NCBI RefSeq assembly: GCF_963853765.1
Contig: NC_088854.1
Location: forward strand, 23,312,001-23,376,000
From: Magallana gigas
Taxonomy: Eukaryota
Length of the DNA stretch: 64,000 bases
Direction: 5' to 3'
Shown: positions 34,194-62,036 of the stretch, in pieces
Layout of the letters: each line of letters starts with the position of its first letter
How positions within the stretch are numbered: position 1 is the stretch's first letter
Position numbers and translations under genes: made by a program
The notes under the pieces: generated by a model
Told to the model about the DNA's origin: nothing
The model's input: only the letters and a program-made list of their open reading frames with translations
Databases searched by the model: none

Positions 34194-35359
34194 ATGAATC
34201 AACAATGTATTGCATACTTCATCCTTATAGTTGGAATATTCACTACAGGTAAATGTCAATTTATTAGCATTGTATGATATGTATTGATTTTACTTACATT
34301 CAGTACGTTTTTTTTTTACCTGGGCAGTTTTCCCTATCCATGTTGTCACTTTGAAATGCAAAGCTGGTTTTGAAAACATCGCAAAGTGGTGTTTTTCAAT
34401 TCATCTTGAGAGCAAATCTTTGTCCAAGTCACGTGAGATTTGCGAGAAGACTGGCGGCAACATGGTTCTACTTGATGAACATATGAAACTAAATTTGCTG
34501 CGGAAATATATTCAAGGTAAATTGGTAAATTAGTTTTACTCCATTGAGACTTTTCTTATTTCCCCGTTTTCATCCTGTAGTTTTATGCCTGTGTTGTTTT
34601 CAAGTTATTTATTACATGAAGCAAATGTATACTTTTGTCATAGACTGATATCTTGTTGCTTTTTTTTTTTTTTTTTACAGAAAAGAGACTTATTCATAAA
34701 CTATACGTGAAAAATAAGGAGGTATTTCAAAATTTCTTTGTTTTCAGTTGATTCGAAAAACTTCGAGTTAAATGTTTTAAATATATAAAAACTTAAGGAA
34801 ATATAGAATTATACGTTGTGTATTACATAAAATTCAATATAATATGGTTAATGCTTTTGTCTTTTATTTTTAAGGCATTGCTGAAATCATATCAAGAACT
34901 TCAGGATCTCTTGACATATCATAAAAAGTGTAAGTGTATGTAAAGGGAGCTGAGAAAGTATTTTGTAATCTTCTTAAATAATCATTGTTTTAAAAATAAT
35001 TTTGACCTTTTAGATTGCAAGTCGTACAAGAAAAACAAGCTTAAAAAACCAACAGAGGAATTTTATGTTCCAAACGCAAAGGTAGAAATTGTGTGCATAA
35101 TATTTTTACGTAACATAAAATGAAAAAGCAGATTTCAACGATACCAGAGGTCTGTCTTTAGTAAGATAGCTTTTAATGTAAAACAAATTTTAGTTTTTAA
35201 ACACTTTACTTCTTAATGATATTTTGTTCTTTGTGCTAACATGCATATTTCATAATATAGTCCCTCAGACTTATGTAAGGAAATCCGATTGTGTTTGTAT
35301 AGAATGCACTTGTTTATAAAGAATGCACTTCGGTTGCTTAAAGTCGAATTTATTAAATT

Positions 35360-35407
<48 letters not shown>

Positions 35408-36993
35408 AATAAATCATATTCATTCATTCATTATTAGTTACCCGTTTTCTTTGATGAAAATGAGCGTGCGCGATTGACAACCCCACCTGGCTATTTTATT
35501 GCCAACTCTTCAATACCCAGTGCTGGATACGGAGCATGGACAATGACTGGAGTCAAAAAGTATACAGTACTTGGGGAATATGAGGGAGAGGAACATAAGA
35601 AAGAAGGGAACCAGCCTTACTCCTGGGTTGTGCGTATCTATTTCTGTATACATTTTACTTCATTTTTCCCAATGAAAGATTATAAATGAATCATAAGCAG
35701 ACAGTTATGGTTCGTATACAAAGATGTAATAATAAGTACGTTACATTACGTAAAATGTACATTATTTTTAAGTTTTGTGATCTCTTGAACTCGCTAATGG
35801 CGTTTCCAAAGTTACTTTGATAAAAATATTAGCTAGTTAGTATAATTTTGTGTTGACATGATACCTTGAAGTTTTAAAATAATGTACTTATACAGCGATC
35901 GATATTGCTCATTTGATGCAGAGAGTTTAAGAACAGTTTCATAAAATGTTTTAATATTGTTTTGATTTTTTTAATTATTTCGGGATTTTTTTTAATTTTC
36001 AAGCTTTACTTTTCAAGAACATTAAATTCAGAATTTTTTAGCTTACTCAGTAACTTATTTAAATTCATTTTATTTTTCAAGTCCTAGACCACCAAGCTTG
36101 ATGCTGGTTATTTATGTGAAATGAATCAGTAGGAATAAAGAGAGGGATATGTCAACGATATTGTTCTTTGAAACATTTGATAAAACTATCTATATACATA
36201 GTTTTACAACTTAAATATAACCAATATCATAAACGAATACGTATTAATACAGTTTTCTACTGTTTTAGTCGAAATTTTGCTCCTTAATTAAATAATATGG
36301 TTTTGATCATGCTAACAATGTAACTTGTTTGATAATGTTACTTGTCGTTAACAAGTATTTTTTCATCTACAATGCATCTAATATACAAGATATATGAAGA
36401 TAAAGAAAGGAAAAAGAAACATTATATAGACGCATCTTCTCCCGCCAAAAGTAACTGGTTGCGGTATGTCAACTGTGCAAGGAATGTGCGCGAAGAAAAC
36501 GTGTTTTCATTTGGTTGTGACGGCCTAGTATTTTATATGACGACAAAAAACGTGGAGCCCAACACAGAGTTACTGACCTGGTATGGAGAAAATGATGGAC
36601 GTTTCTTGGGAATAAAGAGATTGCATCCAGGTTGTTATCTACATGTAATTAAAAAAAAATCAGACACATATATACATGCATAAACGCAATGTTTTTATTT
36701 ATTTAATCCATTTCTTCTATGTTTCAGCAAGCGAAATGAATCTGAAATCAGCTTCTCACATCCGTCTGAGTTATATGCCTAAAGATTCATTAAAAGATTA
36801 TCTTAAATATCATCAAAACTGGTTTTCAAATAAATATGATAAAAAGAGCAACAAAACATATCATGGAATTATAGACACTTATGAGGATGGGACGTGGACA
36901 ATGCAGCGGGAAGGAAATTACACGTATTATACTGGGGAACAGGGACTTCTAGTTCCATTTGTGTGTGAACATGAACCACTGGAAAAAGAATAA
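34194..36993 (+). CDS. Signal peptide + split C-type lectin-like domain with inserted PR/SET domain, copy A, 8 exons, 368 aa
   Basis: Exons 34194-34248 (MNQQCIAYFILIVGIFTT), 34328-34516 (VFPIHVVTLKCKAGFENIAKWCF..EICEKTGGNMVLLD..YIQ), 34681-34721, 34875-34929, 35014-35081 (YCKSYK..FYVPNAK), 35438-35629 (RARLTTPPG..SSIPSAGYGAW..LGEYEG..YSWV), 36390-36630 (YIDASSPAKSNWLRYVNCARN..VFYMT..ELLTWYG), 36728-36993 (..HIRL..NW..WTM..PFVCE). All GT-AG, phases 1,1,0,1,0,0,1; 1107 nt, frame closed. Confidence 0.92.
35361..35402. repeat. (CT)n microsatellite in intron 5 of copy A
   Basis: About 20 CT units with one interruption. Confidence 0.95.
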
Positions 36994-38801
36994 GATCAAA
37001 TATGTTATTTAAATTAGTGCAATGGTTTATGTAGATAAATACCTGTGTAAAGTATTAGATATACATACAATATAACTTAGATAAAAGGATTGTTATTCCT
37101 ATCTCAATCTGATTATTTTTATGGTGAAGGATATTACAAGGTACGTTCTCATGTGCCCCTCGTTAATATCTTGCGTGCTTAACTATTGATAATCATTTAC
37201 CCTCTGATGGCGGTCGTTTTATTTTCTTATGATACAAATCAGTCACTATTATATCAATATCTTGGGTACAAATAATCAATATCTTCTAGATTTTTCATTT
37301 ATGTAACGTTCTGAATGTTTATCTATTGAACGTGGTTCTAATTTCTAAAACTTTTACATTTTACCGACAGACTGACACTGAGACATGAAAAAAATATAAT
37401 TGCGAAAGTTGACAATTAAAAACAAAGTAAAAAAAAATATTTCGGCTGTGGCTCAAAGTATCGATTATAATCACTAAAATATTTAATGGGGGAGTCAATA
37501 AATAATGTCCAAATTTTAGTGAGTTAACCTCTAGAAAATCGTTAACCAAAATACTGTCAATCATACACGAAAGACTACAAGGTAACAATTTGGAATTTTA
37601 TCAGCCAAGAGGAGAAAAGAGCCTTAGTTCGCTGTAATGTTTATATATTTGCACTTTCGAAGGTGATATACAGTGAGTGAAGGGAAAGATCGATTTTAAC
37701 TACGGACTTCTGACATTCCTGTTCGTCTGGTAGGTACAATGTATGTCACTTTTTTTAGGGAGTGGTGTCATTTTTTGAATATGTGTTGCAAATTAATATA
37801 GAATGGCTAGTATTAGCAACAGATGCCAGAGAATTTTTCACATTGTTGTTGCAATATCTATTTGATGTGGCATTAACTTCTCAAAAGAAAAATGCAGATT
37901 GGGGTGTCAAAGGGAATATATTAAACGACAATTAAATAATATAGCTGAGAAGTGGATTTTATTTAGCTTTATATTTCATCGTTTGTGAACACACCCTCTT
38001 TTGTCATTGCGGCACAGTGATTTTAAACTAGTTCGGCATATATTTGATTAATTAGTGCTGATGAAGAAAATTATATCCGATTCCTCCTGTCAATAATACT
38101 GTCGCACATCAAATTTCACTTGCAATTCAAAAAAAAGTTCTGGAGATGAAAAAAGATGCGTTTTCAAACATTAATATAACCATTCAAATCAATATCAGTG
38201 GAGTCAACAAATAAATTTTTAGTAAGTCTAAAATCTAGTTACCTCGATAAAATCGTTAACTGAAATAAAAAGGGTTCGTATTTCTTTACTGGTTAACAAT
38301 TCTTTTGTGGTATTTTTAACGATCAGCCAAACATTGTTGTCAGCTGTCGAGTAATGTATTCAAGACTGGTGAGCACTATGTTATGTTTACGTTTGTTTAA
38401 TTTTCCTGTATAAAGCGTTTTTACGGATTAATTTCTTCTTGTTTGCTCTTTATGAGCACAAATAAACGGTATCTAGTGTTCGTCACATACTAAAACATTA
38501 TAAACAACATAAATGGAAAACTTAAAATAAAAAATATTTAGCTAACATCATTACCATGCTTCGAACCGTAAGAAATATGCATATTTCATGGCCAACAAAA
38601 AAATAGGTGGTTAAATTGTATTTTTTTTAGTATACATCGTTGTATTCAATTTATTTGTTCTTAAAAAGTGATTCAACGAAATAGACTTAAAAGTTAAAGT
38701 CTTTAGATATACAAATCCCAGTTTCAATGCAACTGTTTTACCGTTAAGAAATATCATTGTAAGAATCGGCTTTATTCTTTTATACAGGATCTTCAGATAA
38801 A

Positions 38802-40014
38802 ATGACACAGCAATCATCTGCATTATATATCTTTATAGTTACAATCGTCACCTCAGGTAAATATATTTTTTTTTCATTTTTTGAAATGTAATCAAACCAA
38901 AATGAATTAAGTTTGTTAATTACTTTTACAGTTTTCACGATCAATGTTGCCAATGTGAAATGCAAAGCCGGTTTTGAAAACGTCGGACAATGGTGTTTTT
39001 CATTTTATCTTGAGAGCAAATCCTTGTCAGACTCCATTGAGATTTGCACAAAAGCCGGTGGCAACATGGTTCTAATGGACGAATACAGGAAGATAGAGNN
39101 NNNNNNNNNNNNNNNNNNNNNNNNNNNNNNNNNNNNNNNNNNNNNNNNNNNNNNNNNNNNNNNNNNNNNNNNNNNNNNNNNNNNNNNNNNNNNNNNNNNN
39201 NNNNNNNNNNNNNNNNNNNNNNNNNNNNNNNNNNNNNNNNNNNAAATTCGTACTCAAAAAATTACTTATCTTATACGGTTTAGTTTTCATTTCGACTTTT
39301 AGATCGATCAGAATGTGATCCTTATACGTAAAAAAAGAAAGAAAATTAAATGCTTAATGTTACAGTGTGCACTAATACATGGACAAAGGGTTAGATATTA
39401 TGACGAATATCGAATACATGTATCGATAATATCCTTTTAAGATGAAGAATTGATTCCAGTAGGTCTAGTTAAAGTAAACTAAATGGTTACTAATTTTCTT
39501 TACACACTGTCGATGGTTAGATATTGAGATACTGATTTTTTTTTTCTCTTCTGTTTCATTTGTTCATTTTTTTAACTACAGCAACAAAATGCCTATTTAC
39601 TTATTTAAATTAATAAAAAACTTTATATGTTCAATTCTTAAATATTTTTCTCCATGATGTTTTTTTTTCCAAATGCTTACTAATGTATACTAATGAATTG
39701 TCACTTAATAATTTTTTGTAGAAAAAAGACTCATACATAAACTGACTGTGCAAAACAGAGAGGTAATTTGAATGTAACAGTATACTATTGTATATATATA
39801 TATATCACAAATCACAAATTATTTGCCCATTATTATGGTTGATAATATTCATAAGATTATGTATATGACTTTCCAAATTAATGTTTTTATATGCATTAAC
39901 TTTTACACGACTGGTTTTTTTTCTGTTAAATGAATTTCTAACTAATTTTAAAGGCATTGATAAAATCTTATCAGGAAATTCGTGAAGTAACAACATATCA
40001 GGAAAATTGTGAGT

Positions 40015-40091
<77 letters not shown>

Positions 40092-41845
40092 CACAGCTTT
40101 CAATTTTTGTCTCTTTTATGACTGTTAATATCACTTTGACCAAAAATATATAGTAACATATATTTAGATTGCAACACCTACAAGACAAATAGATTGTTAA
40201 AACCTGCAGAAGAATTTTACATCCCAAACGCCAAGGTAGAATTCATTCTATTTTTAAACAAATTACAGGTGGAAAAAAACTAAATTCGTAATTTCAAAGG
40301 TATAAAAAAATCATGACACATCAATTGTTTGATATGAAAAAAAGCATTGATACCAAGTTTGGTTGCTTAGAACTTGCTTAAATAGTTTGAAATAAAACAA
40401 TATTTTCTGAATGAAATTTGACCCCATTTGACATCACCATAGAAACACATAGAGAACACTTCTGTAAAGTTTGATAGAAAAAAATTTAAATTACAGCTTC
40501 CGATTAACTTTAATGGAAATGGACGTGCGAGATTGACAACTCCAAGTGGATTTTTCATTGCAAAGTCATCAATTCCTAGCGCCGGATACGGAGCATGGAC
40601 TAAGACTAAAGTCCGGAAGTATACAGTCTTAGGAGAATATGAGGGAGAGGAACATAAGATAGAAGGGAATAGTCCATATTCCTGGGTTGTATGTACATAT
40701 ATAAGTATTTATATTGTATGCATTTCGGGTCAGGTTTTGAATGCTTTAGAGATCTGATAATATTTCGGTTTATGTGGTTAATCGAGCCTTATAGGATTAT
40801 GAACATTTATTAACTTTATTATGTTATAGGTTTAAGATTAACAAAATATCGATATTAATTAATATTATTAAGATGCTTAAGCATTGGCTTAAACTGACAC
40901 GTTAACTTCATTTATCCATCTTTAACAAGGCATTAATAACATTATTTCTCTTTTTTAAATTTGTAAAGACTTGATACAGTTTAAATCGGTGCTTTGAGTT
41001 TTATTATGTTATTGATTGTTAATCCATTTTTCAAATGTGCAGATATATGAAGATAAGAAAAAGGAAAAGAGGCATTTTATAGATGCTTCCTCTCCCGCCA
41101 AAAGTAACTGGTTGCGGTATATCAACTGCGCAAGAAATATGTGGGAAGAAAACGTGTACTCCTTTGTATGTGATAACTTAGTATTTTACATGACAACAAA
41201 AGAGGTGGAACCCAACACAGAGTTACTGACATGGTATGGACGGAACGACGGATTGATGCTAGGGATTACAAAATTACATCCAGGTAGAATGTGTTTTCAT
41301 AAATATAAGTAGGCACAACTTCTCGTGGTTATAGAGTTCAAGGTTTCAAGGATACTTAATTTCGTGGCTAATGATCCTATCAATACACTATTGTTTCCGT
41401 TATAATTGCTCTTCAATGGACATTTATTTCGTGGGTTAACTAAGTAAAATCTACGCAAAAATATAATATTAAATGAAAACTGACGAAGCCACAGCATCTG
41501 TGACAATATATGCACAACGAAAACTTATTTAATCGATCACAAACACATGATATTATGTGTCATTTTTTTCTCATTTCAGCGAGTGAGTTGGACTTGAATT
41601 CAACATTTTATATTCGATTGAGTTATATGCCTCAGGATTTAAAAAAAAACGATCTCAAATACCACCAAAACTGGTTTTCAAATAAACACGATATAAAGGA
41701 CAATAAAATACAGTATGGCATTCTTGACTCATATCACGATGGAGCGTGGAAAATTCAGCGGGAAAATAATTATACGTATTATACAGGTGAAGACGGATTT
41801 TCAGTTCCATTTGTATGTGAACATCAACCACTTGATGTTAAGTAA
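38802..41845 (+). CDS. CTLD-PR/SET chimeric gene, copy B, 8 exons (end of exon 2 hidden in a gap)
   Basis: Exons 38802-38856, 38932-(gap at 39099), 39722-39762, 39954-40008, 40168-40235, 40497-40688, 41043-41283, 41580-41845. Every fully visible exon has the same length and phase as in copy A; no stops in visible exons. Confidence 0.88.
39099..39243. other. Assembly gap (145 N)
   Basis: Run of N. Confidence 1.
40019..40088. repeat. (TA)n microsatellite in intron 4 of copy B
   Basis: About 35 TA units. Confidence 0.98.

Positions 41846-43121: not shown

Positions 43122-43123
<2 letters not shown>

Positions 43124-43152
<29 letters not shown>
43124..43152. repeat. (CT)n microsatellite
   Basis: About 14 CT units. 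Confidence 0.95.
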
Positions 43153-43155
<3 letters not shown>

Positions 43156-43481
43156 CCATCAGAAATCTACATATTAACATGGATTAAATTGATTAGATTA
43201 TCATTCTGGTTGAAAAATGCGTCACAGAGATGAAACGTCAATTCTTCATCATTGAAAAGGTCTCTAAGACTTTCTCAGTCTGACATAATTGTGTGCATTC
43301 TGTCCTGTCCACGAGGATTTTACACACAGTGTAACTTTATTTTCCTAATTCACAGGAGTAAAACTCCGGCATAATTTTTCAATGTTTTGATTATCTAAAT
43401 AAACTTCTATAATTCATAAAGAGAATACTCTAAAATACTTAGCTAACAATTTTGATGAGTTCATGCGCGCATCTAGAAGGG

Positions 43482-44533: not shown

Positions 44534-47500
44534 ATGGGAACTTTCTCTGAAAATTTAATCTTCATTGCTGGTAATATAATGCTGTTGTAAATTTTTGTCA
44601 GTCAGAATTGTTGCTGGTTAAATGATGATGCACAGTTTTAGTTTGTTTCAGTTTTAGTCAACTTTATAAGAAATACACTTAGTGAAGATGAATTTATACG
44701 ACTTGGAATATGGTGCTTTTCTTTTCACCTGGAATATGAACCACGTCATACATCCGAGAAAATATGTTCAGAAAAAGGCGGTCAATTGATTATGTTGGAT
44801 TCAGATAAGAAAATAGCAGTTGTTAGGAAATATATAAAAGGTAATTTTATGTAAATACAAAATATGTTTATAGGTCGGTATATATATGATAAACACACAA
44901 AAAAGGAAACGAATTCAAATTTCAAAAATATTGTGAAATCAGTTTAAGAAAAGTGTGTTTTTTTAATTTTTGTTAAAGATATCAGCATGTCTACATTTCC
45001 CTTCCATCAAAAAAGCGCTATTCTCACTCTGTCAGACATCAACAGTCACAAATATTTCGTGCATTGACAAAACAGGTATCCTTTGTGTGAGAATTGTTTT
45101 TGAATTCCAATCAGTTTGAAATCAAAAGTTTTTGAAACTTGTGTGTGCAAAGAAATCTTACGAATTTTGATACAGTCTTGATGTGGTCATAAATAAGAAC
45201 ATTCTACAAGTCCTCGTTTTGGAATTTTGCCAAATCAGAAGATGGCCATATTAAACATGTACATCATCTTTCTCTCCAATAACTTGTATTTTGTATTATG
45301 GTGCACATCATGGTCAGTGACTTCAATGAGAGACATTTTATTTCATTTCCCAAGCACCATATGACGGTGCCTAAAACAGGTATATACCAAGACATTCGAT
45401 ATCAGAAAAAAACCATCGGTTTGAATATGAAACAAGTATTTTCATTATACTTTCATGTTAAATACTGAAATCTGATTGGTTTAGACCCAGTTGATAATCC
45501 TTTCTATTACCCTCAGCGTTAGCAATACACTTAGCAACGGGTAACACAACGAAATATTACATGTGCGTACATTATGCGCGTAGGTTTGCCGTAGAATTCG
45601 CGTCATTTCTATGTAAATACAATAAATTATCTCTTAAATTAAAACATTCACTATAATAAAATAAATAGTGCCTGTTTTGGAAGGTAACAGTTGAAATTGA
45701 CACCCCTCGATAAACATTGTCAACCTTCGCTTCGCGTCGGTTGACAATCGTTTTCTCGGGGTGTCAATTTCACTTGTTACCCTCCCAAATAGGCACTATT
45801 TATATGATACTGCATAGAGGATGTGAATGTCAAAGTAAGTTTACTGCTCAGTAAAAAAAACCCCTTTAACTTAATAACCAATCAAATTTAACCTTTGATC
45901 GAAAAGAAATTGCTTTTTATAATGACTTCTTTATCCATTACGTAGTACTTTACTCATGATGTTTCTTTTGATAGCTAGAGGATTCACATCAGAGCTGAAT
46001 CTACAAAAAAGACAGGTACAAACGCAATATCATCATTGTAGTTATGGTTTTCTGTTATGTTGATTTATTACTTATTCAAGACTACAGTTTATCTTGGGTT
46101 GATTTGTAGATTTTACTGAATTCATATCACAGAATTCAAGACACGGTTAACTATGGAGAAAGGTGTTAGTATATCTGATAATTTCTTTATCCCCCACCTC
46201 TGTCTAATAAAATAATTCAATCAAAGTGTTTTATCATTGGTAAACTAGATTAAGAGTGTACAATAATATATAAGGTAAAATTAATGCGTTGAATTTTATT
46301 TTTGCAGTTTGTCGTATGTACAAGAATTATAGAATGGCAAAACCAAGCAAAGTTACTTATATCCCAAACAAAAAGGTATTACTCTGTAAGAGTAAACATG
46401 ATAAAAATGTTGTTTTTTATTTATAGAATATGGAGAATACCTACTTTCATAAAATAAGCAGTATTGTTTTATAATTATATTGTATAACTAGAAATATGTC
46501 TTTACTTAACAATCATTCATAGCTCCGGGTAAATTTTCTTGAAAATCAACGAGCAAACTTGACAACGCCAACTGGTTTTGTCGTTGAACCTTCCTCTATT
46601 ACTGGTGCGGGATTGGGAGCCTGGGCAAAGAAAAGGGTCCGCATGTATACAGTTATAGGGGAATATGAAGGAGAAGAACATAGGAATGAAGAATTCATTT
46701 CACATTATCAATGGACCGTACGTGTCATTCAGAGGCTGGGTGGTCGTGGCCATTATAAGACAATATAAATCTCCTTAAAAAGAAGAGCTCTGTATAAAAA
46801 TATAGGAAAACATTCCAACTTTACAGTTAAAATTTAAGGATTTTTTATTCACGAAAAAAAAACAGTTTACAGCTTGAAAAATCATTCTTTTTTAATTTAA
46901 GGTAGATCTGTTGTTACTTTTGTTGAGCACCCAGCCTCCTAAAATAAAATTTAATCAGATATACTTAAACCATATACGAACCAATGATCAGTAGTATAAC
47001 TGATTGAAATAGCAAGTAAGTGTTGCAGGTCTTTCGAATTAGCTATTCATATTTTCAAATACTGCATTATTTTACGGTTTAGTTGAGACGGTTATCTTAT
47101 TTGTTAAGGCATTTGAGCTTCGAAAAATTTAAGAGAGGGTATGTAAAGAATAATGAATTACCAATCTTGGCCTGAAATTAAAATTGCATTTTGAAAGATT
47201 TTTCGTGCAAAGAAAAGTATCATTGTTGTTTTTAAACATTTAGATCCCTGAGATTGAGCAGGCCATGAGCTATTACATAGACGCAGCTTCTCCCGCCAAA
47301 AGTAACTGGCTCCGGTACGTCAACTGCGCCAGAAATGTGCATGAAGAAAATTTGAAGCCAATTATTTGTGACGGTTTAGTATTTTACATGACGTCAAAGG
47401 ACGTAGAACCAGACACAGAGCTGCTGGTTTGGTATGGTACAGAGTATGGAAAACATCTCGGAATCACGCGCATGCATCCTAGTAAGTATGGTCGGTTATT

Positions 47501-48124
47501 TTCAAATATCTCTTTTTTTTATAAGGATTTTAAGGTAGATTATGCCACACTCACAACTATAATCAGTTATGATTTGATGGTCATTATACATGTACGTATA
47601 TTCATTACGGCACTATACACTAAGGAGAAAAAAAAACTGCGTTCTTGGCTATATTTTGTAGAGGGTTTTTAATGCGACAATGATAAACAAAAATGCACTG
47701 TAGCCCATCTTTTACGTTTGGAAAGTAAAGTGTTCAACAATTTTTTCATGAATTTCTAATAGAATTATGTAATATGTGCTATGCCGTGTGCATGTATATC
47801 AAATGTTATTTGTAAATTTTATAATATTTCATAGGCGATGAATTAGATTTGAAGTCCACTTTCTATATCCGGGTATATTACTCACCTCAAGCTCCAGACT
47901 CGACGTTGTATTCCTTCAACAGTCATATTTCAAACAGACCGAACAGCTCGGAGACAAACAATGGAATGTTGAATAAAACATACTTTGGGATGCTGGATTC
48001 CTACCGTGGTGGAATGTGGAAATTGGTTCTTGAGAAAAATTATTCTTATTTTAGTGACGATGGGCTTCATTTTCCATTTATCTGCGAATATAACCAAAAC
48101 ATATGTCTCAATTCTCATAATTAG
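44534..48124 (+). CDS. CTLD-PR/SET chimeric gene, copy C, 8 exons, 370 aa
   Basis: Exons 44534-44570, 44652-44840 (..IWCFSF..KICSEKGGQLIMLD), 45975-46015, 46110-46164, 46308-46375, 46523-46717, 47244-47481, 47835-48124 (..FYIRV..WKL..FPFICE). Same phases as copy A; 1113 nt, frame closed. The start codon is less certain than in A, D and E. Confidence 0.88.
45661..45803. repeat. Long imperfect palindrome (~65-bp arms) in intron 2 of copy C, probably part of a non-autonomous element
   Basis: ATAAATAGTGCCT..GGTAAC..GAAATTGACACCCC..ATTGTCAACC / loop TTCGCTTCGCGTC / GGTTGACAAT..GGGGTGTCAATTTC..GTTACC..AGGCACTATTTAT. Confidence 0.85.
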
Positions 48125-48720: not shown

Positions 48721-49840
48721 CGGAAGCGTATTAGGGCCACTCTATGTACAGATTTTTTTTTTAAATTCCAACTTTAAAGTTGGAATTTCCAACTTTAATC
48801 TTGGAATTTCCAACTTTAATCTTGGAATTTCCAACTATAAAGTTAGAATTTCCAACTTCCAACTTTAATCTTGGAATTTCCAACTTAAATCTTGGAATTT
48901 CCAACTTTTATCTTGGAATTTCCAACTTTAAAGTTGATTTTTCCAACTTTAAATTTTGAATTCCAACTTAAATCCTGGAATTTCCAACTTTAATCTTGGA
49001 ATTTTCAACTTTAAAGTTGATTTTTCCAACTTTAAAGTTGGAAGTTCCAACTTTTATCTTGGAATTTCCAACTTTAATCTTGGAATTTCCAACTTTCATG
49101 TTGATTTTTCCAACTTTAAAGTTGCAAATTCCAACTCAAATCTTGGAATTTCCAACTTTAATCTTGGAATTTCCAACTTTAATCTTGGAATTTCCAACTT
49201 TAATCTTGGAATTCAATTCAACATATATATTCATTGTTCAAGATTATCATACTACCGTATATGTATGTGTTAACTGAAAATTATTTGTTGAAAATTGCAG
49301 AATAGATTATTTTTTATATATAATCACTTTCCTAAATGTTTTTCACTACTATGCTTCATAATGCTTAATCCTTTTAATTCTTTTATTTATTGAGGTTTTT
49401 TTTAAAATTTATTTTATATGTATATGATACAATCAAGCAACCTTTTATACACATATATATATATATTGATTATGACATAGTTATTGTTTTCATGGAATTC
49501 AAAAAATAAAATTGAAATTATAAAAATGACATGTTCTATTATTTCCAGTGAGTTCGAGTTGTTGTATTATTATATTGGGTTCTTCTTGAAAGCGAATGAG
49601 CTCCCCCATTCTTTTTATGAGCAAAGCCTAATTCACACTGAACAAAAAATCATAGTATATATCTATCTATCTATATATATAAATATAATAAAAATCAACT
49701 TTAAAGTTGATTTTTACAACTTTAAAGCTGGAAATTCCAAGATTAAAGTTGGAAAATTCAAGAATAAAGTTGGAAATTCCAACTTTTAAGTTGGAAGTTT
49801 ACAGAAAAAAAAAATACAAAGTGGCACTAATACGCTTCCG
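48721..49840. mobile_element. TA-flanked foldback-like non-autonomous DNA transposon with internal 21-bp tandem array
   Basis: TA|CGGAAGCGTATTAGGGCCACT ... AGTGGCACTAATACGCTTCCG|TA (21-bp TIR, 1 mismatch). About 20 units of TTGGAATTTCCAACTTTAATC at 48765-49215, and a shorter inverted array at 49690-49800. Confidence 0.88.
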
Positions 49841-51026: not shown

Positions 51027-53715
51027 ATGATCAACAAATTTTGTTTTTTCGTTTTCATTTTAGGTAAATATTATGATGGATAGAAAGCTTGTTTTAATGT
51101 TATTAAAATTGTCAACTGCATATAAGTGTATTTTATCTAATTTTACAGTTTTACCATTTTCTGTCAAAAGTGAAAAGTGCAAAGTAGGCTATGATAGTGC
51201 GGCAGAATGGTGTTTTATGCTTCAACTGCAAGGAAAATCTGCGCTCGGGGCAGCAGAGATTTGTAATAAAACTGGTGGCAGAATAGCCTTACTGGACAGC
51301 TATAAAAAGATAGAGATTCTTCGGACCTATATTAACGGTAAAGTATTAAATTCTTTAATGCTTATTTATTAGTTTGTTTGTTTGGGTTTTAGTTTTGTTT
51401 TGGGTGGGGTTTTTTTATTATTTTGTTTTTCATTTTCATTAGTTTTGAGGGCGGGTAGATTGTTTGTTTTTTATTGAATATAATAAGCTAACGATTTTTA
51501 CTAAGAGTTTTGAGTTATATTCGTGTAATAATTCAATGGACGTTTATACATCACTAGTGATTAAAGGGGAAATCCCTGAATTTAGTTTGACTTTGATTCA
51601 AGTATAAATTATATGTATAATGTTTAAGTTTTAAAAATTATAATTCATAAATGATATTTAGTGAAATTTATTAAAATGTACTCGTAAATTTTAATTCCTG
51701 ACAGTTTAATCAATGTGCTTTAACTCTTCAACGTAAATTTTTAACTCTTATCTCTGTATTTAGAGAAAAAAGAATTTTTACTGGCTTCGTCGATTAAAAC
51801 CCAGGAGGTACGTACTAAATCGTTTCTATGTGTAGCACGAGCGAGTATTAACATTGAGTAATTTGAATGATTTTTAAGATAACCCACTCCTGAATGTTGT
51901 TGAATCATGAATTTTTTGAGAAGTGTATCATTGAAATATTTAGACAAAACATAGTTAAAAAATACAAATAAAATGGGGGGGGGGGGGGGGGGGGTCAGTA
52001 TTCATCCCTCAGAATTATGGCCCGTTTAATTTGACCTTTTGCACTTAAAACGGAATGGAATTTCAGCCTGATTAGGATTAGTTGTCAGTATTTTTGATTA
52101 GGCAAACTTATTTCTTCAAATATCGTTTTCAATTATGCACAATGGTCACACTGAATAGATATATCATAAAATATATCATAAACTTTTTTGTGATCTTTTT
52201 GCAATATCTTTAATAGTTACAATTTGAATATCAAGAATTTTATAAGATATATACAGTTTGCCAAGATATGTATTCAGTATCATTTTGACATAATAAAACA
52301 TGGGGGTCAGTGATGTCAAATTTTAGGTATAGGGCTTCAAACGTAAAATTCTAGAAAAATTTCCTAAAAAAATTCAGATATTTAATATAAATTTGCGTGA
52401 TTTTATGCCAAACGTATATCACTCTCTCAAGATTTAATTTTGTACATGTCACACAGAACCTATAGAATATGTTACAAACCCATCAAATGTTTAAAATGTT
52501 GATAATGAATAAATTTATAAAGAAAGGAAAAGTATTTTGAACATCTATAAAATTGCTTATTTCTGTCATTTTTGTCTAAAAAACCTTCCACACGAAAAAA
52601 TAGTTCCCCAGAAAATGTGTTTGTTTCTTTCATTCAAATAGATTTTCTTTATGAATGCTATGTAATTATAAGCTATTAATCTTTCTGTGAATATTAAATA
52701 AATGAAATCATTTTCATTTTAAATATAATGATCATCTGCGTAATGAAATCAAAACGTGAGGAGTGAGATACCGTAATCAAAGTTTTTATCTATTTTTTCA
52801 GCAGGACTTAATGATGTCATACCGTAGAATAAGAGACATGAGTGATTATGCAGATAGATGTACGTATTTGTAATATTTGAAATCCCAACTTACATATACA
52901 AATGCTAGCATAATGTAATCCATCTAGCAATCTACCAATTCAAATGTATCATATTGTGAGTGTCACCCTGCATTTTTTTATTTATCTATTTGCAGATTGT
53001 AAGACTTACAAAAGGTTTAAGCTGTTCTGGTCAACAAGGAAGTTGTATATACCAAACAGGGAGGTTTGTAAGAATAAATCGTATCATTAAATGAACAATG
53101 CCTATTTGCATCTTGAGTTTTGATTTGTTACTTCTGTTGAATCATTGTTTATTAGTAGTAAATTCCTGTATAGCTTCCTATCCAATTTGATGCAAACGAA
53201 CGTGCAAATAGAACAACACCGGCTGGGTTCATCATTAAAACCTCGTCTATTCCTGGTGCGGGACTTGGGGCATGGACAACATCAAAAGTTCCCATGTTTA
53301 CAGTTCTGGGGGAGTATGAAGGAGAGGAGCACAAGCACGAGGGGGATACGTCGTACTCCTGGATTGTAAGTTGGCTGGGGCATTGACTCCTGGTTAGTGT
53401 GGATAATTTTCATCAAAATATAGTTGTCTTAGTTTTGTTTTTTGATTGCACGTTTGCATAACTGATTTTAGAAATTCAAACTGAAAAGTACACGTATGTG
53501 CATATGCACACGTAAGCACATTTACATCATTTTACAATTTGATATTAAAGTGTTGATCTTAGATATCTCTTTTTTTCTTTCAATTCCACTTTTTTTATCC
53601 TGAACGAAATGTAAGTTTTCACTTGAAGATATAACTAAATGATGATGGTTTTATATATGAACACCCACAATAGTACAGGAGCATCGCCGCTTTACCACTT
53701 CGTATTTATCATGAG

Positions 53716-53803
<88 letters not shown>

Positions 53804-54577
53804 CTAGTAGCTTCCTGCAGGAATGTCGTAATTTTAAAATGAAAGTTTGTATTTTGTGATATTCTATTTCGTAAGTATATGCTAATTGGTAATTTAAATT
53901 AACGTTGAGTATATGACGACCAGAATTCAGTGATTTATTGGTGTTATTTGTCTCATACTAAACAGGTATTTGAGGATGACGAAGAGGAACAAATGCACTT
54001 TATTGACGCGTCTTCTCTCGCCAAAAGTAACTGGCTACGTTACGTCAATTGTGCTAGAAATGTGCATGAAGAAAATGTAAAGCCAATAATATGTGATGGG
54101 TTAGTATTTTACATGGCGACCAAAGATGTCGGGCCCAACACAGAACTATTGACTTGGTATGGAGAAAACGATGGACGGTCGCTTGGAATCACTCGCAGAC
54201 ACCCAGGTACATGTATTATAGGACAATACGTTTATAGCTGTATATAACCTGAACAACAAAAGAAAACTCTTTTATTTAAGTTGACAGTTGCATTTCTAAG
54301 AAACGTAGATTTTTCCTCTTAAAAAATAAAATTTATGATCCCCCGCCTTCTTTTTCTCATTGTAGCTCGTGATTTGGAACTCCGATCAACCAATTATGTG
54401 CGAGTAAAATACAAAAATCCATGTAACCCGGATAATCACTTTGTCCTCTTCGATCCGTTTAACAAGAAAGGGCGGCATATTCAACGAGAGTATGACTACT
54501 CTTATTACACTGGTACAGCGGGACTTCTTCTACCGTTTGTGTGTGAACATAGCCCTGTAGATACCGGTATACACTGA
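51027..54577 (+). CDS. CTLD-PR/SET chimeric gene, copy D, 8 exons, 345 aa
   Basis: Exons 51027-51063 and 51149-51337 (MINKFCFFVFILVLPFSVKS-EKCKVGY..EWCF..EICNKTGG), 51764-51807, 52805-52859, 52996-53063, 53174-53365, 53966-54206, 54366-54577 (short CTLD C-half ending PFVCE). 1038 nt, frame closed. Confidence 0.9.
53719..53802. repeat. (TA)n microsatellite in intron 6 of copy D
   Basis: About 42 TA units. Confidence 0.98.
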
Positions 54578-55199
54578 TTAATGTAGCTCTGTATGCAATG
54601 TCTTGTATTTTGTGCCTTTGAATATCCAATTGAATGGTGTTGAATTAGAAATAAGTTACTAAAGAAAAATAGTCATCATCAAAAAAATCGACTTTAAATG
54701 ATGACGTCGCCGGGCGTCACGGAACACTGAGAAGTGATAACAGTATGCATTCAACTTGGGAAACACAGAATTGTACGATTATGCAAAAATTATGTCAACA
54801 GTTATTTTAAGACTGTTTTATATTACAAATAATCGAATTAATAACATGATATGCATTAGACGATTCCGGCTGCATTATGCATATGACCTTTTTCTAACCT
54901 TGACCTTAGAATAAATTAAATAACTATTAATTAGTTGTTGTGAGTGCTTGTTTTGGATTTTTTTTCACGATCATTAACATACAAATTATTCGCCGATCAT
55001 CAAATCAATACATTGTATGACGCCATACACAAAAACAAGCCAATCTTTGCAAAATTCAGCCAAATTAACCACTATCCGTGGTACATCTCCCATCAAATCT
55101 AGGCGGTCAATTTTGCATTAGTTGCAATGGTAATCAGTTAAACATACAACCATAAGTAAACTACAATTAATTGCATCAATACTCAACAACTTCAAAACA

Positions 55200-56240
55200 T
55201 TTGGCCATGACAAAGCTTATTGTTTCATATTTGAAAAAAAAATCTCTGTCGATGGATGACATGTATTGCAACAATGCATTCTTCAATGAAGTTACATTTA
55301 GTTCATATCCCAAATCAAACAAATGTATACAATCTGTGTACTTGAAATATCAAGATTCTTAACCACAAATGTAGCAAGAGCTGAACTTATTCTAGTTCTC
55401 CAATTTTCTCTATCTTTTTTCGAAAAACATAAAAACCAATTTCTACGTGGCAAGATGTGACCATTAATTAATTGTCGTTGGAAACAGGTTTGTTACGATA
55501 GACACAGTCAACTTCATGTACTTTTGTAGACCCCTCAGTGTATTATGAGGGTTGCCAATATCATTGCAACCACAATGTATTACTAAAAGTGTTGGGTGTC
55601 TTTTATTCTGCTTTAGCATTTCGTTGATTGTCTTTTGGTTGTTGACTGAGACCAAATCATACCCCTAATTCCATACCAAAATATTTTTTTGTTAGTCCCA
55701 AGTTGTCATTGGTTTTTTGTTACGCATATTTCTGAGCCCATTGAATTATAAATGATCACCCGATCATGATATACAATATGATGTTGAATAGCTGATGCAA
55801 GTTCTTTCGTTAAGTTAACAACATTTTTTTCTTTTAATGCAATGGGTACATGAGCCCCAGATGATGATACTATACTATAGAAATGTTCGGGGTTTTTGAT
55901 GTCAAACAAACAATCTGTACCTATATTGGTGCTAAATCCTGCTACCAAAGGCTCGACTGTATTCTAGTTAATGTTGACTGATCCGATATGGTACTTGCCC
56001 TTTCTAGATCAGATAAACAGATGGTTGGACCCCAGGATCTGGCAGACTTTTGGCTTGTTTTATAACTTCTACCTGAAGTCTCGGTAGATGCGACTGAGGA
56101 AGGACCGCTGGAGAATGATATCACAACGTTTGCCACCCGTGTAGACGCCCGGGAGACTACAACAGCTCCCCTTGTCGAAGGTCTGGCATAAGGGCTCTTG
56201 GACTTAGACGTCCTTTTGTTTGCTCTCAACACCTCATGAT
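55200..56240 (-). mobile_element. Decayed DIRS/Ngaro-like retroelement relic: gag 5' part joined to an SGNH-hydrolase ORF
   Basis: Gag-like MLRANKRTSKSKSPYARPSTR.. and SSSGAHVPIALKEK (56232-55830). SGNH blocks MIG*SFIIQWAQKYA (~55770), IFWYGIRGMIW, PTLLVIHCGCNDIG (~55570), WSHILPR, DCIHL (~55320), with several stops and frameshifts. No RT, RNase H or recombinase seen. Confidence 0.65.
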
Positions 56241-58221
56241 ATAAGAAGTTTGAGAAAGAATTACATGTAGTAGGCTACTTTGTAATTATACTATTTTGTT
56301 TACTAAATTAATAATGCTTAAATATACAACAAATAGTTATATTTTTATTCAATTTCATGTATTCATAATTTACCTCTTTAATCTTGGATGTTTTGGATAT
56401 TTTTTTTGGAGACGAATTCATACCACCTATCAACTTTGGGCTATTAAGTGGGAAAAGGAAGAAGCAACTGCCCGGTCATAAAGATGTAATAAATAAGAGT
56501 TATGGATCTTGCAACAATGACAGAACACACAATTGTGCTTCAGATAACCTTTGTTTATCCAGAGATGCTAAACCCTATTATTCGCACATTTGTGTTTAAA
56601 TGCAATGGGGTTTTTTTTGGTAGTTGGAATTGTATTTTAGACATCAAACAGTCCCAAATAAAGTAGAATATGAAAAAAATATGATCGGAACGTCAGATGA
56701 CGTTCGAGGTTTTTCCATACCCTAAACGAAGAGATGTACACGGTTTAAAAAAAAATGAAAGCTTCGAAAAACTTCATGTAACTTAAAATTCTCGAACAAT
56801 TGTGATCAAATAGCCAAGTGGTATATAGAGCCTTTTTGACCTAGTGAAAGGTACTAGAGACTGTTATATATTAGATGTAGATAGGGTATTTTAAATTGTT
56901 TGAACGTTGCTGGCTCTGTGTAGACAAAACCTGTTTTTAAAATTGGGTAACAAGAATACTTTTTCATCAAATGGAATAAAACTTCATATGTCAATAAAAA
57001 TGCATGTTTGTGCATAAATCATTCAATGTGTTAGTTTTAAAGGCTTTCGTGAAAAATAAATGAAAAACAGCGACATTGTCTACTTACGATCAACCCTCAT
57101 ACGTCAATTTGTTCTTCATTTTTTCGTTGGATTCTGGGAAATCAATCTAGAAATTATACGACAAATTAGATGACTTGTCAAATTAAAAATTTTTGATGAA
57201 AGAAGATTAACAAACAAATTTTTTTCTACGTAATTCTAACAGGGTTTTACCGATGAAAAATGTGTTTAGAAGGAGTTGTTGTCTTATTAATGTTACGATT
57301 TTTTAGGATAATATTTAATTCTTCGTTTTCTTGGGTTTCAGACTGGATTTTGGTTTACTGATGAGTTTTGAGTGAAAATTCCACCAGTAGAAATCCATTC
57401 TGAAATCCAAGAAAAAAAAAGAACAGAACGGGTTAGGATTTAATTAGCAAACTATCACTGCATTGTTTATTTATTCATCATAAGAAAAAAATATCTATTG
57501 ATGAGAGTCAGACTCCTTACTTTGGCTTCCGGATTTAAAGTATTTTGGTTTCAATACAGTTGAATTAATCAATGATTGAGATGGTTGACGGTTTGTTATT
57601 ATCAATTTTTCATTACCTAATCTACCGGTATTCAATTTGTATTATCTTTCGTACAAGAAATGAATTCAAATATTTAGAATGTACTTAGATACTAGATCAC
57701 ATGAGATAACTGTTATAAAATTCAATTATTTTTTATTTAATCTATGGGAATACAAACGTACACACATACACGTGTGTAAACAAATGATCGGTTCATACAT
57801 CGATGGAGTTACAGCGTTTGTAACTAAAGAACCCAATCAATACTCAGTACCTTATGAAGTATAATTTTTCAAGGTAACTGTTGTTGAATTTGATATTGTA
57901 ATAATTGTTGTTTGATTGTATCCCTAACCTTTATTTCAATAAAAATGGAATATTTCTCGCTAAAAACTGTTATTTGTAAATCGAAGCAGTCTTTGTTAAC
58001 AAATTTTATAACGCAGCTGTGTCCAAAGTTTATTGATTACCATAAAAGATTTCCTTAAAATTAAATCAATGTCTTTAGTGTGTTTCAATGTATTCACTCT
58101 TGTGTCTATACTAATACGTGTATTTGAAACAAGAGCAGTGTTTGACTGAAATTGATTTTCTTTACTATAAAGGATGTCAATCGACACTGTCCGAATGAGC
58201 AATCTTTTTTAAGGATCTGTT

Positions 58222-61200
58222 ATGAAGACCTTAAATTGTATACTTTTTTACTTTCTTATCAAAATAATAGGTAGGGCTTGGTTTTTGCAAATCCTATTTT
58301 ACGAGTCCTTCGAAAATTATGTTCATTCTTATGCATTGCTGTTTTAAACAGAAGGTAGAAGATGCAAGAAAGGTTTTGACAATATCGGGAACTGGTGTTT
58401 CTCTTTTCATCCGAATGGTGCATCTTTTGTAAAATCTAGTGAGATATGTGGCGAGATCGGAGGCGATTTGGTGGTATTAGATTCACTAGAGAAGGAAGCC
58501 ATGCTGACAGACTATATAGAAGGTTGGTCAAGCAACGAAGCATTTTGACGTAAAATAATTTATTCATTCTTATTTTCATTTTACTTAAAAATTACATAAT
58601 TTTTCTTATTTATTCATCATAATTCGTTACTTGTTAGACAGGTAAATATTTCAGTAAGAAGACTGGATGGTCAACAAATTAACCATCAGATCTGAACTTT
58701 TGAGATATGCTTTTTTTTTGCTGTAGATTTTTAGCTCAACGGGAAATTCGGGTTCACGGCTAGACAATCCGAATTTTCCGAGGAGCTACAAGTATGCAGC
58801 TATTTTTTGTTTACATACAAACTATTAATGATTTAGTAGGGAAAAAATCCATATTTCTTAAATTTAAAATATGGGTACTTTTCTGTATTATCAAGTATTT
58901 TTAATTGAGTTATTCTTCTAAAGGACATCGTTAAAGTCTAAAAATGGCCACGACCATCGAGTCCTCTTATTTATTTGTAAGATCTATATGCCCATATTTA
59001 TACTGCAAACATTGTTTGATTTGTAGCTAAAGGCTTCACATACAAGACGACAGTTTCTAATCGAGAGGTGCTGAATCAGTTTCGTTGGTGGTATTGAACT
59101 GTAATGAAAATGAATGTCAAATTATTTAAAAAACCATATGGTACATTATGTATTTTATTTTACTTCTTTCTCTTTTAATTTCAGGATTTGTTAAAATCTC
59201 ACCATAGATTAAAAGTTGCTGATAAACACGCTGAAAGATGTACGTACACAATAAAATGAATCGATTTCAGAAATCGATAACTCATGTCTCCATTCCCTGT
59301 ATTCGATTAAACAATGGTTGAGAAAAGTCTTGTTATAATTAGTTAAATGATATAAGAAATCATGTATTTTTACTTTTTAATTTCTTAGATTGTGACTTCT
59401 ATAAAAAGTTTAGATGGATTAAACCTACAAAAGAATTGTATATTCCCAATGCTGAGGTAATATTGTAAAAGAGTGAAGCTAATGTACTTTTTTTCAAAAT
59501 TCTATTTCATTTCTCAATGAAATTTCTCGTAGGGGTCTGGACTGGGTTTTACAAAAGAACTTACGACAAAGTCACATGGAATGATCTTTGACGAACAAAA
59601 TATATATAAAACCATTTATTTACAACTATTTTGATTTCCATTATTAAATTTTACAGCCAGAATAATAAAATAATGGTTAGTTTGGGATTAAATAGCATTT
59701 AAAAAAAGTTCTTTTGTAAAACGCAGCCCGAGTCGATTAACTAATGTCCTTTTATGTGAACTGTGTCTATAACGATTTGTCAACTCTGAATTGATAAACA
59801 ATACCTATCCAGAAAAATGGTGTACCCTATATGCAATATTATGTGTGTAAATGACTAAATTCAACAGCTAATACATTTTTCATTAATTATCAAAATATTT
59901 AAATCCAAGTGATATGCAAATCTCTGATATATGTCCAATTGATCTGCAAAACAACTTCGAATTCCTATCTTAAAAACTGAAGGAGGGGTTATCCGTACAC
60001 CAGGGGTAGCCCATTTGCAGTGCTCTGAGAAAAAATGACTAAGTTTAACATCTGGTATTTTTTTTTTCATAAATTATCAAAAATCAAAATCCAAGAAGCA
60101 TGCATGTTTCTGATATATGTCAAATTGATTTGCAAAACATCATGATCACCTTCCTATCTTGAAAATTGTCGGAGGAGTTATCCGTACAATACTGGAGTAA
60201 CCTATATGCAATATTCTGCAAGAAAATTTTCAAGTTTAACAGCTGGTATTTTTTCATAAATATATCAAAAATCATAATTCAAGTAATATACACATCTCTG
60301 ATATACATGTGTATGTACAATTGATCAGCAAAACAACAACTTCCTATCTTGAAAACTGTAGGAGGGGTTATCCGTACAATAGGGATGCCCTTTTAGCAGC
60401 CGCCCGCCCGCCATTTTTACCATTTCATTTATTTTCCTTTGGAAAGCCCGGTTAATAAAATTATTTTAACTGACCTTCATTGTTAAATATTTTCTTGAAA
60501 TGAATTTTACAACTCTGTTATCTTCAAACATAGATCCCAGTGGATTTCGATGAGCTACAGAGGGCCAATTTGACCACGCCCCCTGGTTTCTCGGTCAAGC
60601 TCTCATCTATTCCGGGAGCAGGCCTTGGGGCGTGGACTTCGACACACCTTCCCATCAACAATGTGTTAGGGGTGTATGATGGGGAGGAGTTCATAGACGA
60701 CGGGGAATATATGTATGGATGGATGGTAAGTATCTACATTGTATATGAGGGGCGGCTTGGTGCTGTCCATCTAATTCTTCCTCTCTTCACAAACCGCAGT
60801 GTCTTGTTCTAAACAGCTTTGAAACATAATTATTGACGAAGAGAAATGGTTTTTTTTTTCAAACATGACCTTCAGACTTATTCTAGTAATGGAAAGTTCC
60901 CCAAAAGAATATGTATGGGAAGCTCTTTCAGAATCTTCTTTTTAAGATTGATGCAATTTGATTGACTGTAGATACCATTTCAAACCTTGATCTCTTGATA
61001 ATATGTAGTTTCAAGTTTGTTCACAGCATAACAACCGGTCGACAAATAAAGCGCATTTTTTTTCAAATATTCTTCTCAGAAACTGTGATGTTACAATTAT
61101 TAATCAAGCATTGCCAGAATCGTATGGACTGAATTTCATTCAATAAAGGGTCACTTGAGGCGTTATTTATCCACATTTACATGCTAGGGAAAAATACAGG

Positions 61201-62036
61201 AAAAAATGTTACCCAAAGATAACCCCCGGTTTTTCAAAGGAATTTCCCAAAAATTAATTTATAAACTGTTACTCATTTGACCGATAATACCAATGCAGTG
61301 TATTCTGGGTTATACGTCTCTTCGTATCAAAACCCAGGAAACTTAGTACCTTGAAACTCACATTAAAAAATATTTTGTAGCTAGACAACGTTGATGGTGA
61401 ATTGGCAACCCATTTTGTGGACGCAGGTTCTCCCGCCAAAGGCAACTGGTTAAGATACGTCAACTGCGCCAGAAATGAGCAGGAAGAAAATATCAATGTC
61501 GTCTTTTGTGAAGATTTAGTCTTTTACATTACATCAAAAGACATTGCGCCAAATACTGAGTTGCTTATGTGGTACGGTACTTGGTATGGAAATCTTCTTG
61601 GAATCAAAAGGGTGCACCCAGGTTATTCATTTTGAAGAATTGGTAAAATGGTGTATAAGTCTTAATGTTTAGTGAAATTTTGCCGAATGTGCACTTAATT
61701 GATAAGATCAATCGTTTCTTTGATTAATAAACAGATGACGATTTGGACCTTGATGACGTAATCTACATCCGGGTCAGCAGCTTGAGAAAAACAAGAGACG
61801 GAGACTACTGTTTCCATGACAACACTACTGTGACGTACACAAACTGGATTCCTAAAAGGTTCAATAAAACTCGAGAGCGAGAGTACTGGCAACATGTTTA
61901 CGATCCCTTTGGCTTGTTACTCGCATATTACGACGGAAAATGGAAGTGGGTGTTCGAAAAGGATTACTCTTACTTCACTGGTGATACTGGTCTACTACTC
62001 CCATTTGTTTGTGAAGATAGGTCACATATTAATTGA
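58222..62036 (+). CDS. CTLD-PR/SET chimeric gene, copy E, 8 exons, 372 aa
   Basis: Exons 58222-58270 and 58352-58522 (MKTLNCILFYFLIKIIEG-RRCKKGFDNIGNWCF..EICGEIGGDLVVLDS), 59027-59067, 59185-59239, 59389-59456, 60534-60725, 61381-61621, 61735-62036 (YIRVSSLRKTRDGDYCFHDNTTVTYTNWIP..DGKWKW..LPFVCE). 1119 nt, frame closed. The C-half is the most canonical CTLD of the five. Confidence 0.92.
59790..60420. repeat. ~190-bp tandem array (3+ units) ending in CCGCCCGCCCGCC, in intron 5 of copy E; resembles satellite-carrying Helentron/HINE cores of bivalves
   Basis: CTATCTT(A/G)AAAA(C/T)TG..GGAGG(G/A)GTTATCCGTACA recurs with GGAGG at 59982, 60171 and 60361. Confidence 0.75.

Follow-up and report, generated by a model that had tools for sequence, protein, structure and literature searches.

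Oyster genes combining a PRDM9-type PR/SET domain with the two flanks of a C-type lectin-like domain

PR/SET domains have been described as chromatin enzymes of the nucleus, and C-type lectin-like domains (CTLDs) as extracellular recognition modules. Here, we describe five genes which bring the two together. They lie at positions 34194-62036 of a 64,000-nucleotide (nt) stretch of the Magallana gigas genome (contig NC_088854.1, 23,312,001 to 23,376,000 of the forward strand), called the window in this work. The closest described systems on the side of the SET domain are PRDM9 and PRDM7 (PR/SET structures 4C1Q, 4IJD and 6NM4). The oyster insert has in common with them the GxG, YEG, NWxRYVNCAR, FY and ELLxWYG motifs and three catalytic tyrosines, and the stretch just before the SET domain aligns as well. 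However, the oyster proteins have no KRAB, no SSXRD and no zinc-finger array, they lack the flanking zinc-knuckle cysteine pattern (there is a single conserved cysteine in the linker), and their SET domain is enclosed by another domain, behind a signal-type N-terminus. A PRDM9-type SET domain without a DNA-binding array is also present in C. elegans SET-17 and in PRDM9/7-like proteins devoid of zinc fingers, and 'set-17-like' is the RefSeq name of some of the oyster proteins. Yet SET-17-type proteins are nuclear or germline proteins which are not known to have a signal segment or a lectin-like domain. The secreted bacterial SET effectors, such as Legionella LegAS4 (8SWI), are similar by analogy only, as SET enzymes exported from the producing cell. 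A structural search with one of our models did list 8SWI (Z 9.5), but these effectors are bacterial, have no CTLD and enter host cells, which contain S-adenosylmethionine (SAM), through secretion systems.

The product of the oyster genes, about 370 amino acids (aa) long, consists of a signal-type segment, the first half of a long-form CTLD, a helical linker, a PRDM9-type PR/SET domain and the second half of the CTLD, in this order. On the evidence given below, this nested CTLD-SET architecture is almost certainly real and expressed.

The PR/SET insert and its lectin-like flanks

The arrangement is best followed in copy 1 of the array (34194-36993, + strand, 8 exons, 368 aa). Its exon 1 (34194..34248) holds the ATG and the hydrophobic N-terminus, and exon 2 (34328..34516) encodes the N-half of the CTLD, β0-β1-α1-α2; both end in phase 1. 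Exons 3-5 (34681-34721, 34875-34929 and 35014-35081) encode a lysine-rich linker with one invariant cysteine, predicted to form a long helix. The pre-SET stretch and the PR/SET domain come from exons 6 and 7 (35438-35629 and 36390-36630), and exon 8 (36728..36993, stop codon included), which starts in phase 1, adds the C-half of the CTLD, β2-β5.

The insert is a PRDM9-type PR/SET domain, as the first-pass annotation of this DNA, made from the letters alone, had proposed. Pfam PRDM2_PR matched above threshold in the window exons (1.5e-23 for exons 6-7 of copy 1) and in 20 of 20 family members, with 83-103 bits against a cut-off of 27 and E between 1e-23 and 1e-30; the Pfam SET family likewise scored above threshold. 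Structures of PRDM9 are the closest solved relatives (4c1q with E=1e-24 by sequence; Foldseek template modelling (TM) score 0.76; 6nm4 with a VIA-align Z of 16.2). No Pfam match to KRAB, SSXRD or zinc-finger families was found in the window exons or in the family members scanned, and the proteins end in the C-half of the CTLD. In human PRDM9, Y276, Y341 and Y357 are given as the catalytic residues (Baker et al. 2017, PMC5519329). These are positions 82, 147 and 163 of the 6NM4 chain, and in the HMMER alignment they fall on Y185, Y250 and Y266 of P0120, an allele of copy 1 which provides the residue numbering used here. Across 20 family members, each of the three tyrosines is either invariant or conserved to at least 90%, and all five copies of the window keep them.

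The two flanks were compared with known CTLDs by sequence profiles and by structure models. The N-half profile matches 177 distinct solved CTLD sequences, with single-domain chains down to 5.9e-9 (CD69), and the alignment covers the region from the first cysteine through α2. The C-half profile matches CTLDs exclusively but weakly (E 1e-4 to 0.7). Pfam gave no match when single flank exons were used; on whole proteins, Lectin_C appeared in 4 of 20 members, always below threshold. Two models were then compared with structure representatives by VIA-align. Model 1 is an AlphaFold2 prediction for P0120 based on the 20-sequence family alignment (predicted local distance difference test score, pLDDT, 80; predicted TM score, pTM, 0.74), and model 2 is an AlphaFold prediction for the transcript-supported paralogue P0019 (pLDDT 82). 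In model 1, PRDM SET domains cover residues ~112-270, and whole CTLDs align over residues 27-369 with Z 10-11.8 and 97-118 aligned residues (106/108 for LLT1). For model 2, the CTLD matches reach Z 14-15, with 125/129 residues aligned for SRCL and 136/138 for the bivalve lectin SPL-2. Since both halves align as one complete CTLD, the SET domain is placed in the α2-β2 loop. Thus, the models strongly support the view that the flanks are two halves of a single CTLD into which the SET domain is nested, which is what the first reading of the locus had predicted. The HMMER and Foldseek checks proposed at that time were successful in one part only: SET and PRDM were found by both, but Lectin_C stayed below threshold, and Foldseek of the models against PDB and AFDB gave SET matches and listed no CTLD, because the CTLD is discontinuous. 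It was the profile and VIA-align searches which recovered the CTLD. Among AFDB clusters outside this genome, no match extended past the SET part.

Compared with the CTLDs of SRCL (carbohydrate-recognition domain, 2OX8), SPL-2 (6A7S), LLT1 (4QKG) and CD69 (1E87), the two oyster flanks together give the full fold in the models, and the N-half is clearly homologous by sequence. The N-terminal hairpin and α1-β5 cysteine pairs are also kept: C30, C41, C58 and C361 are invariant or at least 90% conserved, with copy 3 lacking the first of them. In contrast to these CTLDs, the oyster domain is broken by ~200 residues in the α2-β2 loop, the family alignment has no conserved cysteines at the positions of the inner β3-loop disulfide, and the EPN/QPD and WND calcium/sugar motifs are absent from the family alignments. 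The long-loop region varies strongly between paralogues, both in length and in sequence.

Gene structure and transcripts of the five copies

A tblastn search with the hand-built copy 1 protein found five collinear paralogous genes, all on the + strand, and exon models were built for each, from the copy 1 ATG at 34194 to the end of the copy 5 stop codon at 62036. Copy 1 is followed by copy 2 (38802-41845, 8 exons, about 368 aa), copy 3 (44534-48124, 8 exons, 370 aa), copy 4 (51073-54577, 7 exons, 358 aa) and copy 5 (58222-62036, 8 exons, 372 aa). Every readable splice site in the five copies is GT-AG, none of the reading frames contains an internal stop, and the intron phases are conserved. The five-gene array and its conserved frames and phases, both claimed by the first-pass annotation, were therefore confirmed. 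Exons 3-7 measure 41 (44 in copy 4), 55, 68, 192 (195 in copy 3) and 241 (238 in copy 3) nt. Together they form the inserted cassette, 597 nt long except in copy 4, where it has 600 nt, with phase-1 introns on both sides in all copies.

Copies 1 and 2 are 70% identical at the protein level, and the remaining pairs 42-50%. As dS is saturated in most paralogue pairs, values of ω (the ratio of nonsynonymous to synonymous rates) usable for every part could be obtained from copies 1 and 2 only. For this pair, dS is 0.94 and ω is 0.28 for the N-half of the CTLD, 0.13 for the linker, 0.15 for the SET domain and 0.19 for the C-half. The fused gene is kept under purifying selection.

The expression of copy 1 was assessed in public sequencing data. 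In 14 runs, 22-42% of the sampled words from positions 34100-37100 were present, the share of exons in this region being 37%, and these runs were classed as probable RNA. Contigs from four runs, which belong to four studies, were mapped to positions 33500-38700. They contain the copy 1 joints 34248/34328 (in contigs X1, X3 and X5), 34721/34875, 34929/35014, 35629/36390 and 36630/36728, the last one in all four runs. Each of two contigs, X1 record 1 (608 nt) and X5 record 20 (575 nt), connects exon 2 with exon 6 by way of the three mini-exons and reaches the exon 6 end; the lectin-like exon and the SET exon are thus on one RNA. In total, the contigs show seven of the eight copy 1 exons connected in agreement with the model. 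It had been considered earlier that the SET exons might never be spliced to the signal and CTLD exons; this is contradicted by the spanning contigs of copy 1 and by a 1292-nt contig, described below, which encodes the whole of copy 2. Intronic contigs were also present at copy 1, and pre-mRNA or DNA is a possible source of them. The placement of contigs was interrupted at a (CT)n run in intron 5 of copy 1 (35354-35405). Eight further transcript contigs encode a full-length paralogue from another genomic contig (C1).

One contig of run X4 connects sequence downstream of copy 1 with the first exon of copy 2. The transcribed stretch at 37452..37729 (+ strand; X4 record 18 and its loose end) is spliced from 37729 to 38788, with GT at 37730 and AG at 38786-38787, and copy 1 transcripts reach ~37730. 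This stretch is either a 5' untranslated region (UTR) exon of copy 2 or a shared or overlapping UTR exon, or else the product of read-through from copy 1 between the tandem paralogues. One X5 contig has in addition a loose 5' end of 30 nt, joined at 34328, and it was considered as an alternative first exon which skips the signal segment. We rejected this candidate: the 30 nt are a repeat with 89 genomic copies and so provide no evidence for another exon. The repeat often occurs in inverted pairs ~800 bp apart and is reminiscent of the terminal repeats of small DNA transposons such as miniature inverted-repeat transposable elements.

Copy 2 is interrupted by an assembly gap (39099..39243). Its exon 1 and the readable part of exon 2 (38802-38856 and 38932-39098) encode 74 aa, and its exons 3-8 (39722-39762, 39954-40008, 40168-40235, 40497-40688, 41043-41283 and 41580-41845) encode 286 aa. 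The run of N begins 167 nt into exon 2, which has 189 nt in copies 1 and 3, so the gap hides the last ~22 coding nt together with the donor site and the beginning of intron 2, and the continuity of the frame is not readable from the window alone. However, two independent public records cover both sides. RefSeq protein P0092 (XP_065931767.1, Magallana gigas, 368 aa) agrees at every residue with the 74 aa that precede the gap and the 286 aa that follow it, with 8 residues uncovered, and a transcript contig of 1292 nt (SRR11482951) encodes exactly P0092 without interruption. Thus, both sides of the gap belong to one in-frame gene.

The other three copies keep the same plan with some deviations. 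Copy 3 (exons 44534-44570, 44652-44840, 45975-46015, 46110-46164, 46308-46375, 46523-46717, 47244-47481 and 47835-48124), in which the first CTLD cysteine is replaced, is matched in its exons 7-8 by the public fragment P0004. In copy 4 (51073-51337, 51764-51807, 52805-52859, 52996-53063, 53174-53365, 53966-54206 and 54366-54577), the first exon corresponds to the first two exons of the other copies, fused via a 21-nt in-frame remnant of intron 1, and the C-half is shortened by a deletion of ~26 aa. Copy 5 (58222-58270, 58352-58522, 59027-59067, 59185-59239, 59389-59456, 60534-60725, 61381-61621 and 61735-62036) has the most canonical C-half (..TYTNW..). The motifs reported earlier for each copy are generally present, but not without exceptions: besides the cysteine lost in copy 3 and the C-half deletion in copy 4, YTNW is found literally in copy 5 only, with HQNW in its place in copies 1 and 2.

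Predicted topology and possible function

Nearly all family members have a hydrophobic N-terminal stretch which ends 10-20 residues before the first CTLD cysteine. In most paralogues this region resembles a signal peptide: it opens with charged residues, continues with a hydrophobic core and has small residues ahead of the CTLD. A hydrophobic N-terminus had been reported for each of the five window copies; we find it strong in the first two copies, moderate in copies 3 and 5, and weak in copy 4. Several N-x-S/T positions are conserved, but they are weak evidence, as their counts exceed the shuffled expectation in the C1 subfamily only, not in the window copies. The Ostrea edulis paralogue P0034 has a membrane-type tail at the C-terminus. 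Judged by the hydrophobic segments, the disulfide-type cysteines and some of the N-glycosylation motifs, the proteins probably have a secretory or ectodomain topology.

Taking all of the above together, we lean towards the explanation that the locus carries, in tandem, five intact and transcribed oyster-specific genes for a secretory, lectin-targeted and active SET protein. According to this proposal, the CTLD-SET protein would enter the secretory pathway, and its CTLD, devoid of the usual calcium/sugar motifs and equipped with a variable long loop, would serve as a targeting module. The SET domain, with the catalytic tyrosines of PRDM9, would then methylate lysines on the target bound by the CTLD. 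This could take place in the lumen of the endoplasmic reticulum (ER) or Golgi, or in vesicles, where SAM may be available, and possibly outside the cell. In its most specific form, the proposal would describe a lectin-guided lysine methyltransferase acting beyond the cytosol (in the secretory pathway, at the cell surface or in body fluids), with the CTLD loops of ~15 paralogues choosing the targets, for example microbial or matrix proteins. We regard this form as a tentative and rather doubtful possibility.

Several points weigh against the proposal. SET enzymes depend on SAM, little of which is available outside cells, and we know of no lumenal or extracellular SET enzyme in animals. No ER-retention motif was found at the C-termini. 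In copies 1 and 2, the hydrophobic segment is followed by lysines but not preceded by any positive charge, and the missing positive N-flank makes the membrane orientation ambiguous. The CTLD is eroded in places, with the cysteine lost in copy 3 and a loop and a tryptophan deleted in copy 4. Finally, since EPN/QPD, WND and the inner disulfide are all lacking, the ligand of the CTLD cannot be guessed.

Some of these points lead to other explanations. It is conceivable, although unlikely, that the SET domain is not an enzyme here and either binds peptides or lysines or forms a structural spacer on the CTLD scaffold, for instance in a haemolymph, mucus or matrix protein. The scarcity of extracellular SAM would agree with such a role, and so would the fact that CTLD loops and linker differ strongly from one paralogue to another, as is seen in binding proteins. 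Moreover, many PRDM PR domains are described in one published account (PMC9861158) as having little or no measurable activity. On the other hand, the three catalytic tyrosines, GxG and NWLRYVN are invariant or nearly so in paralogues which are ~30-40% identical, and the ω of the SET domain is among the lowest (0.15 in copies 1-2 versus 0.13-0.28 for the other domains, and 0.09-0.23 in other pairs with estimable dS). The low ω and the invariant motifs fit a conserved active site. From these residues, the SET domain may be catalytically active, a view to which we give the same weight as to its opposite. A location in the cytosol or nucleus seems quite unlikely. In this case, the hydrophobic segment would be a reverse signal anchor, or absent in some isoforms, and the SET domain would methylate histones or other proteins inside the cell, with the CTLD as a protein-interaction module. 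The charge distribution around the segment of copies 1 and 2 is in line with this, their lysine-rich linker resembles a nuclear localisation signal, and some public models of C1 paralogues have long alternative N-termini. Those of P0104, P0107 and P0110 (Magallana) carry long arginine/proline-rich repeated extensions, but transcript contigs of the same subfamily give no support to them and instead back the short N-terminus of a C1 paralogue. The sole apparent alternative 5' end, that of X5, is the repeat found throughout the genome. The four conserved cysteines of the two CTLD disulfide pairs also fit an oxidising compartment, and most paralogues have the textbook layout of a signal peptide.

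A splicing switch appears improbable as well. The cassette has phase-1 introns on either side in all five copies, and because of this symmetry skipping of exons 3-7 would keep the frame, giving a plain lectin-like protein, with the SET form as one of two products. However, the SET exons are under purifying selection, and the exon 2-exon 8 joint (34516/36728) was not seen in the contigs of the four runs; this is weak negative evidence, since contigs drop rare variants. We consider it very improbable that the architecture is an artefact, with CTLD-like and SET exons in separate genes or with the copies being decaying pseudogenes. The CTLD lesions in copies 3 and 4 could be taken as signs of decay, and direct transcript support comes from copies 1 and 2 only. 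Against this, CTLD and SET exons occur together in single contigs, copy 2 is encoded in full by a transcript contig, none of the five frames is broken in its seven or eight exons, and ω is well below 1.

The nesting of a SET domain in a CTLD behind a signal-type N-terminus is under purifying selection, was duplicated to ~15 genes and has been kept across Magallana/Crassostrea, Saccostrea and Ostrea. If the protein is both secreted and active, protein lysine methylation would reach an extracellular or lumenal setting in animals, and the family would provide a case from nature in which a targeting domain is fused around an enzyme. To our knowledge, a lectin-guided enzyme of this kind would be the first animal SET enzyme to act on extracellular or lumenal substrates.

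Oyster family, annotation and neighbouring sequences

Half-domain profiles were searched against the 564-Mb genome and gave 14-15 loci: the five described here (contig C2), eight or nine on contig C1 (0.19-1.3 Mb) and one on contig C5. Below these loci the profile scores fall sharply to those of ordinary CTLD genes. A profile search of 1.84 billion representative proteins gave 23 matches, every named one of them from an oyster; the hosts of the family are Magallana gigas and angulata, Crassostrea virginica, Saccostrea cucullata and echinata, and Ostrea edulis. Proteins of mussel, scallop and other animals matched in the SET part only, with 33-48% query coverage, and no full-length relative from outside the oysters was found in the profile searches, the last of which scored only 8000 candidates. 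These searches support a family restricted to oysters, in agreement with the lineage-specific fusion proposed initially.

The same first reading had known of no described protein with this architecture. In fact, no paper describing a lectin-SET architecture was found in our literature search, but the proteins themselves are already present in RefSeq and UniProt under automatic names: 'PRDM9', 'PRDM7-like', 'set-17-like', 'PRDM4-like', 'PRDM16-like' and 'uncharacterized'. The precomputed domain lists for the family proteins contain SET and PR only. No tissue information for the family genes was found in the literature search. The automatic names PRDM9, PRDM7, PRDM4, PRDM16 and set-17 can mislead studies of oyster meiosis and epigenetics which count 'PRDM9' genes. 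An oyster gonad study used the PRDM9 gene LOC105330008 (PMC12111275). The published primers for this gene match contig C9 exactly, and not the lectin-SET loci; it is the canonical PRDM9-like gene of this oyster, located on a different chromosome at C9:42926289-42926729.

The C9 gene is also informative about the possible origin of the family. In the alignment, its SET exon and exon 7 of the family begin at one and the same position (the exon 6/7 boundary, query 65/66), and this shared boundary is more consistent with genomic exon shuffling than with retroposition. We propose that a five-exon PR/SET cassette of a PRDM9-like gene was inserted in a phase-1 intron of a CTLD gene, and that the fused CTLD-SET gene would then have been duplicated in tandem.

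The remaining observations concern the sequences around and between the copies. Upstream of the array, two transposon remnants lie on the - strand, one at 1635-2678 with a retroelement aspartyl protease and reverse transcriptase, and the other at 6537-6956 with a fragment of a Harbinger-type DDE_Tnp_4 transposase. Between copies 3 and 4 there is a 21-bp minisatellite of ~21 copies with 81% matches (48766-49213 and 49722-49796), which yields long spurious open reading frames (ORFs) in several frames. Three successive ORFs without a Pfam match are found on the - strand between copies 4 and 5 (55464-56232); they may be part of a mobile element, and one of them has a stretch, LLVIHCGCNDIG, resembling the block I motif of SGNH hydrolases. 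Two perfect microsatellites were found within the genes, (AT)36 at 40018-40089 in intron 4 of copy 2, and (TA)42 at 53719-53802 in the intron that separates the SET exons of copy 4.

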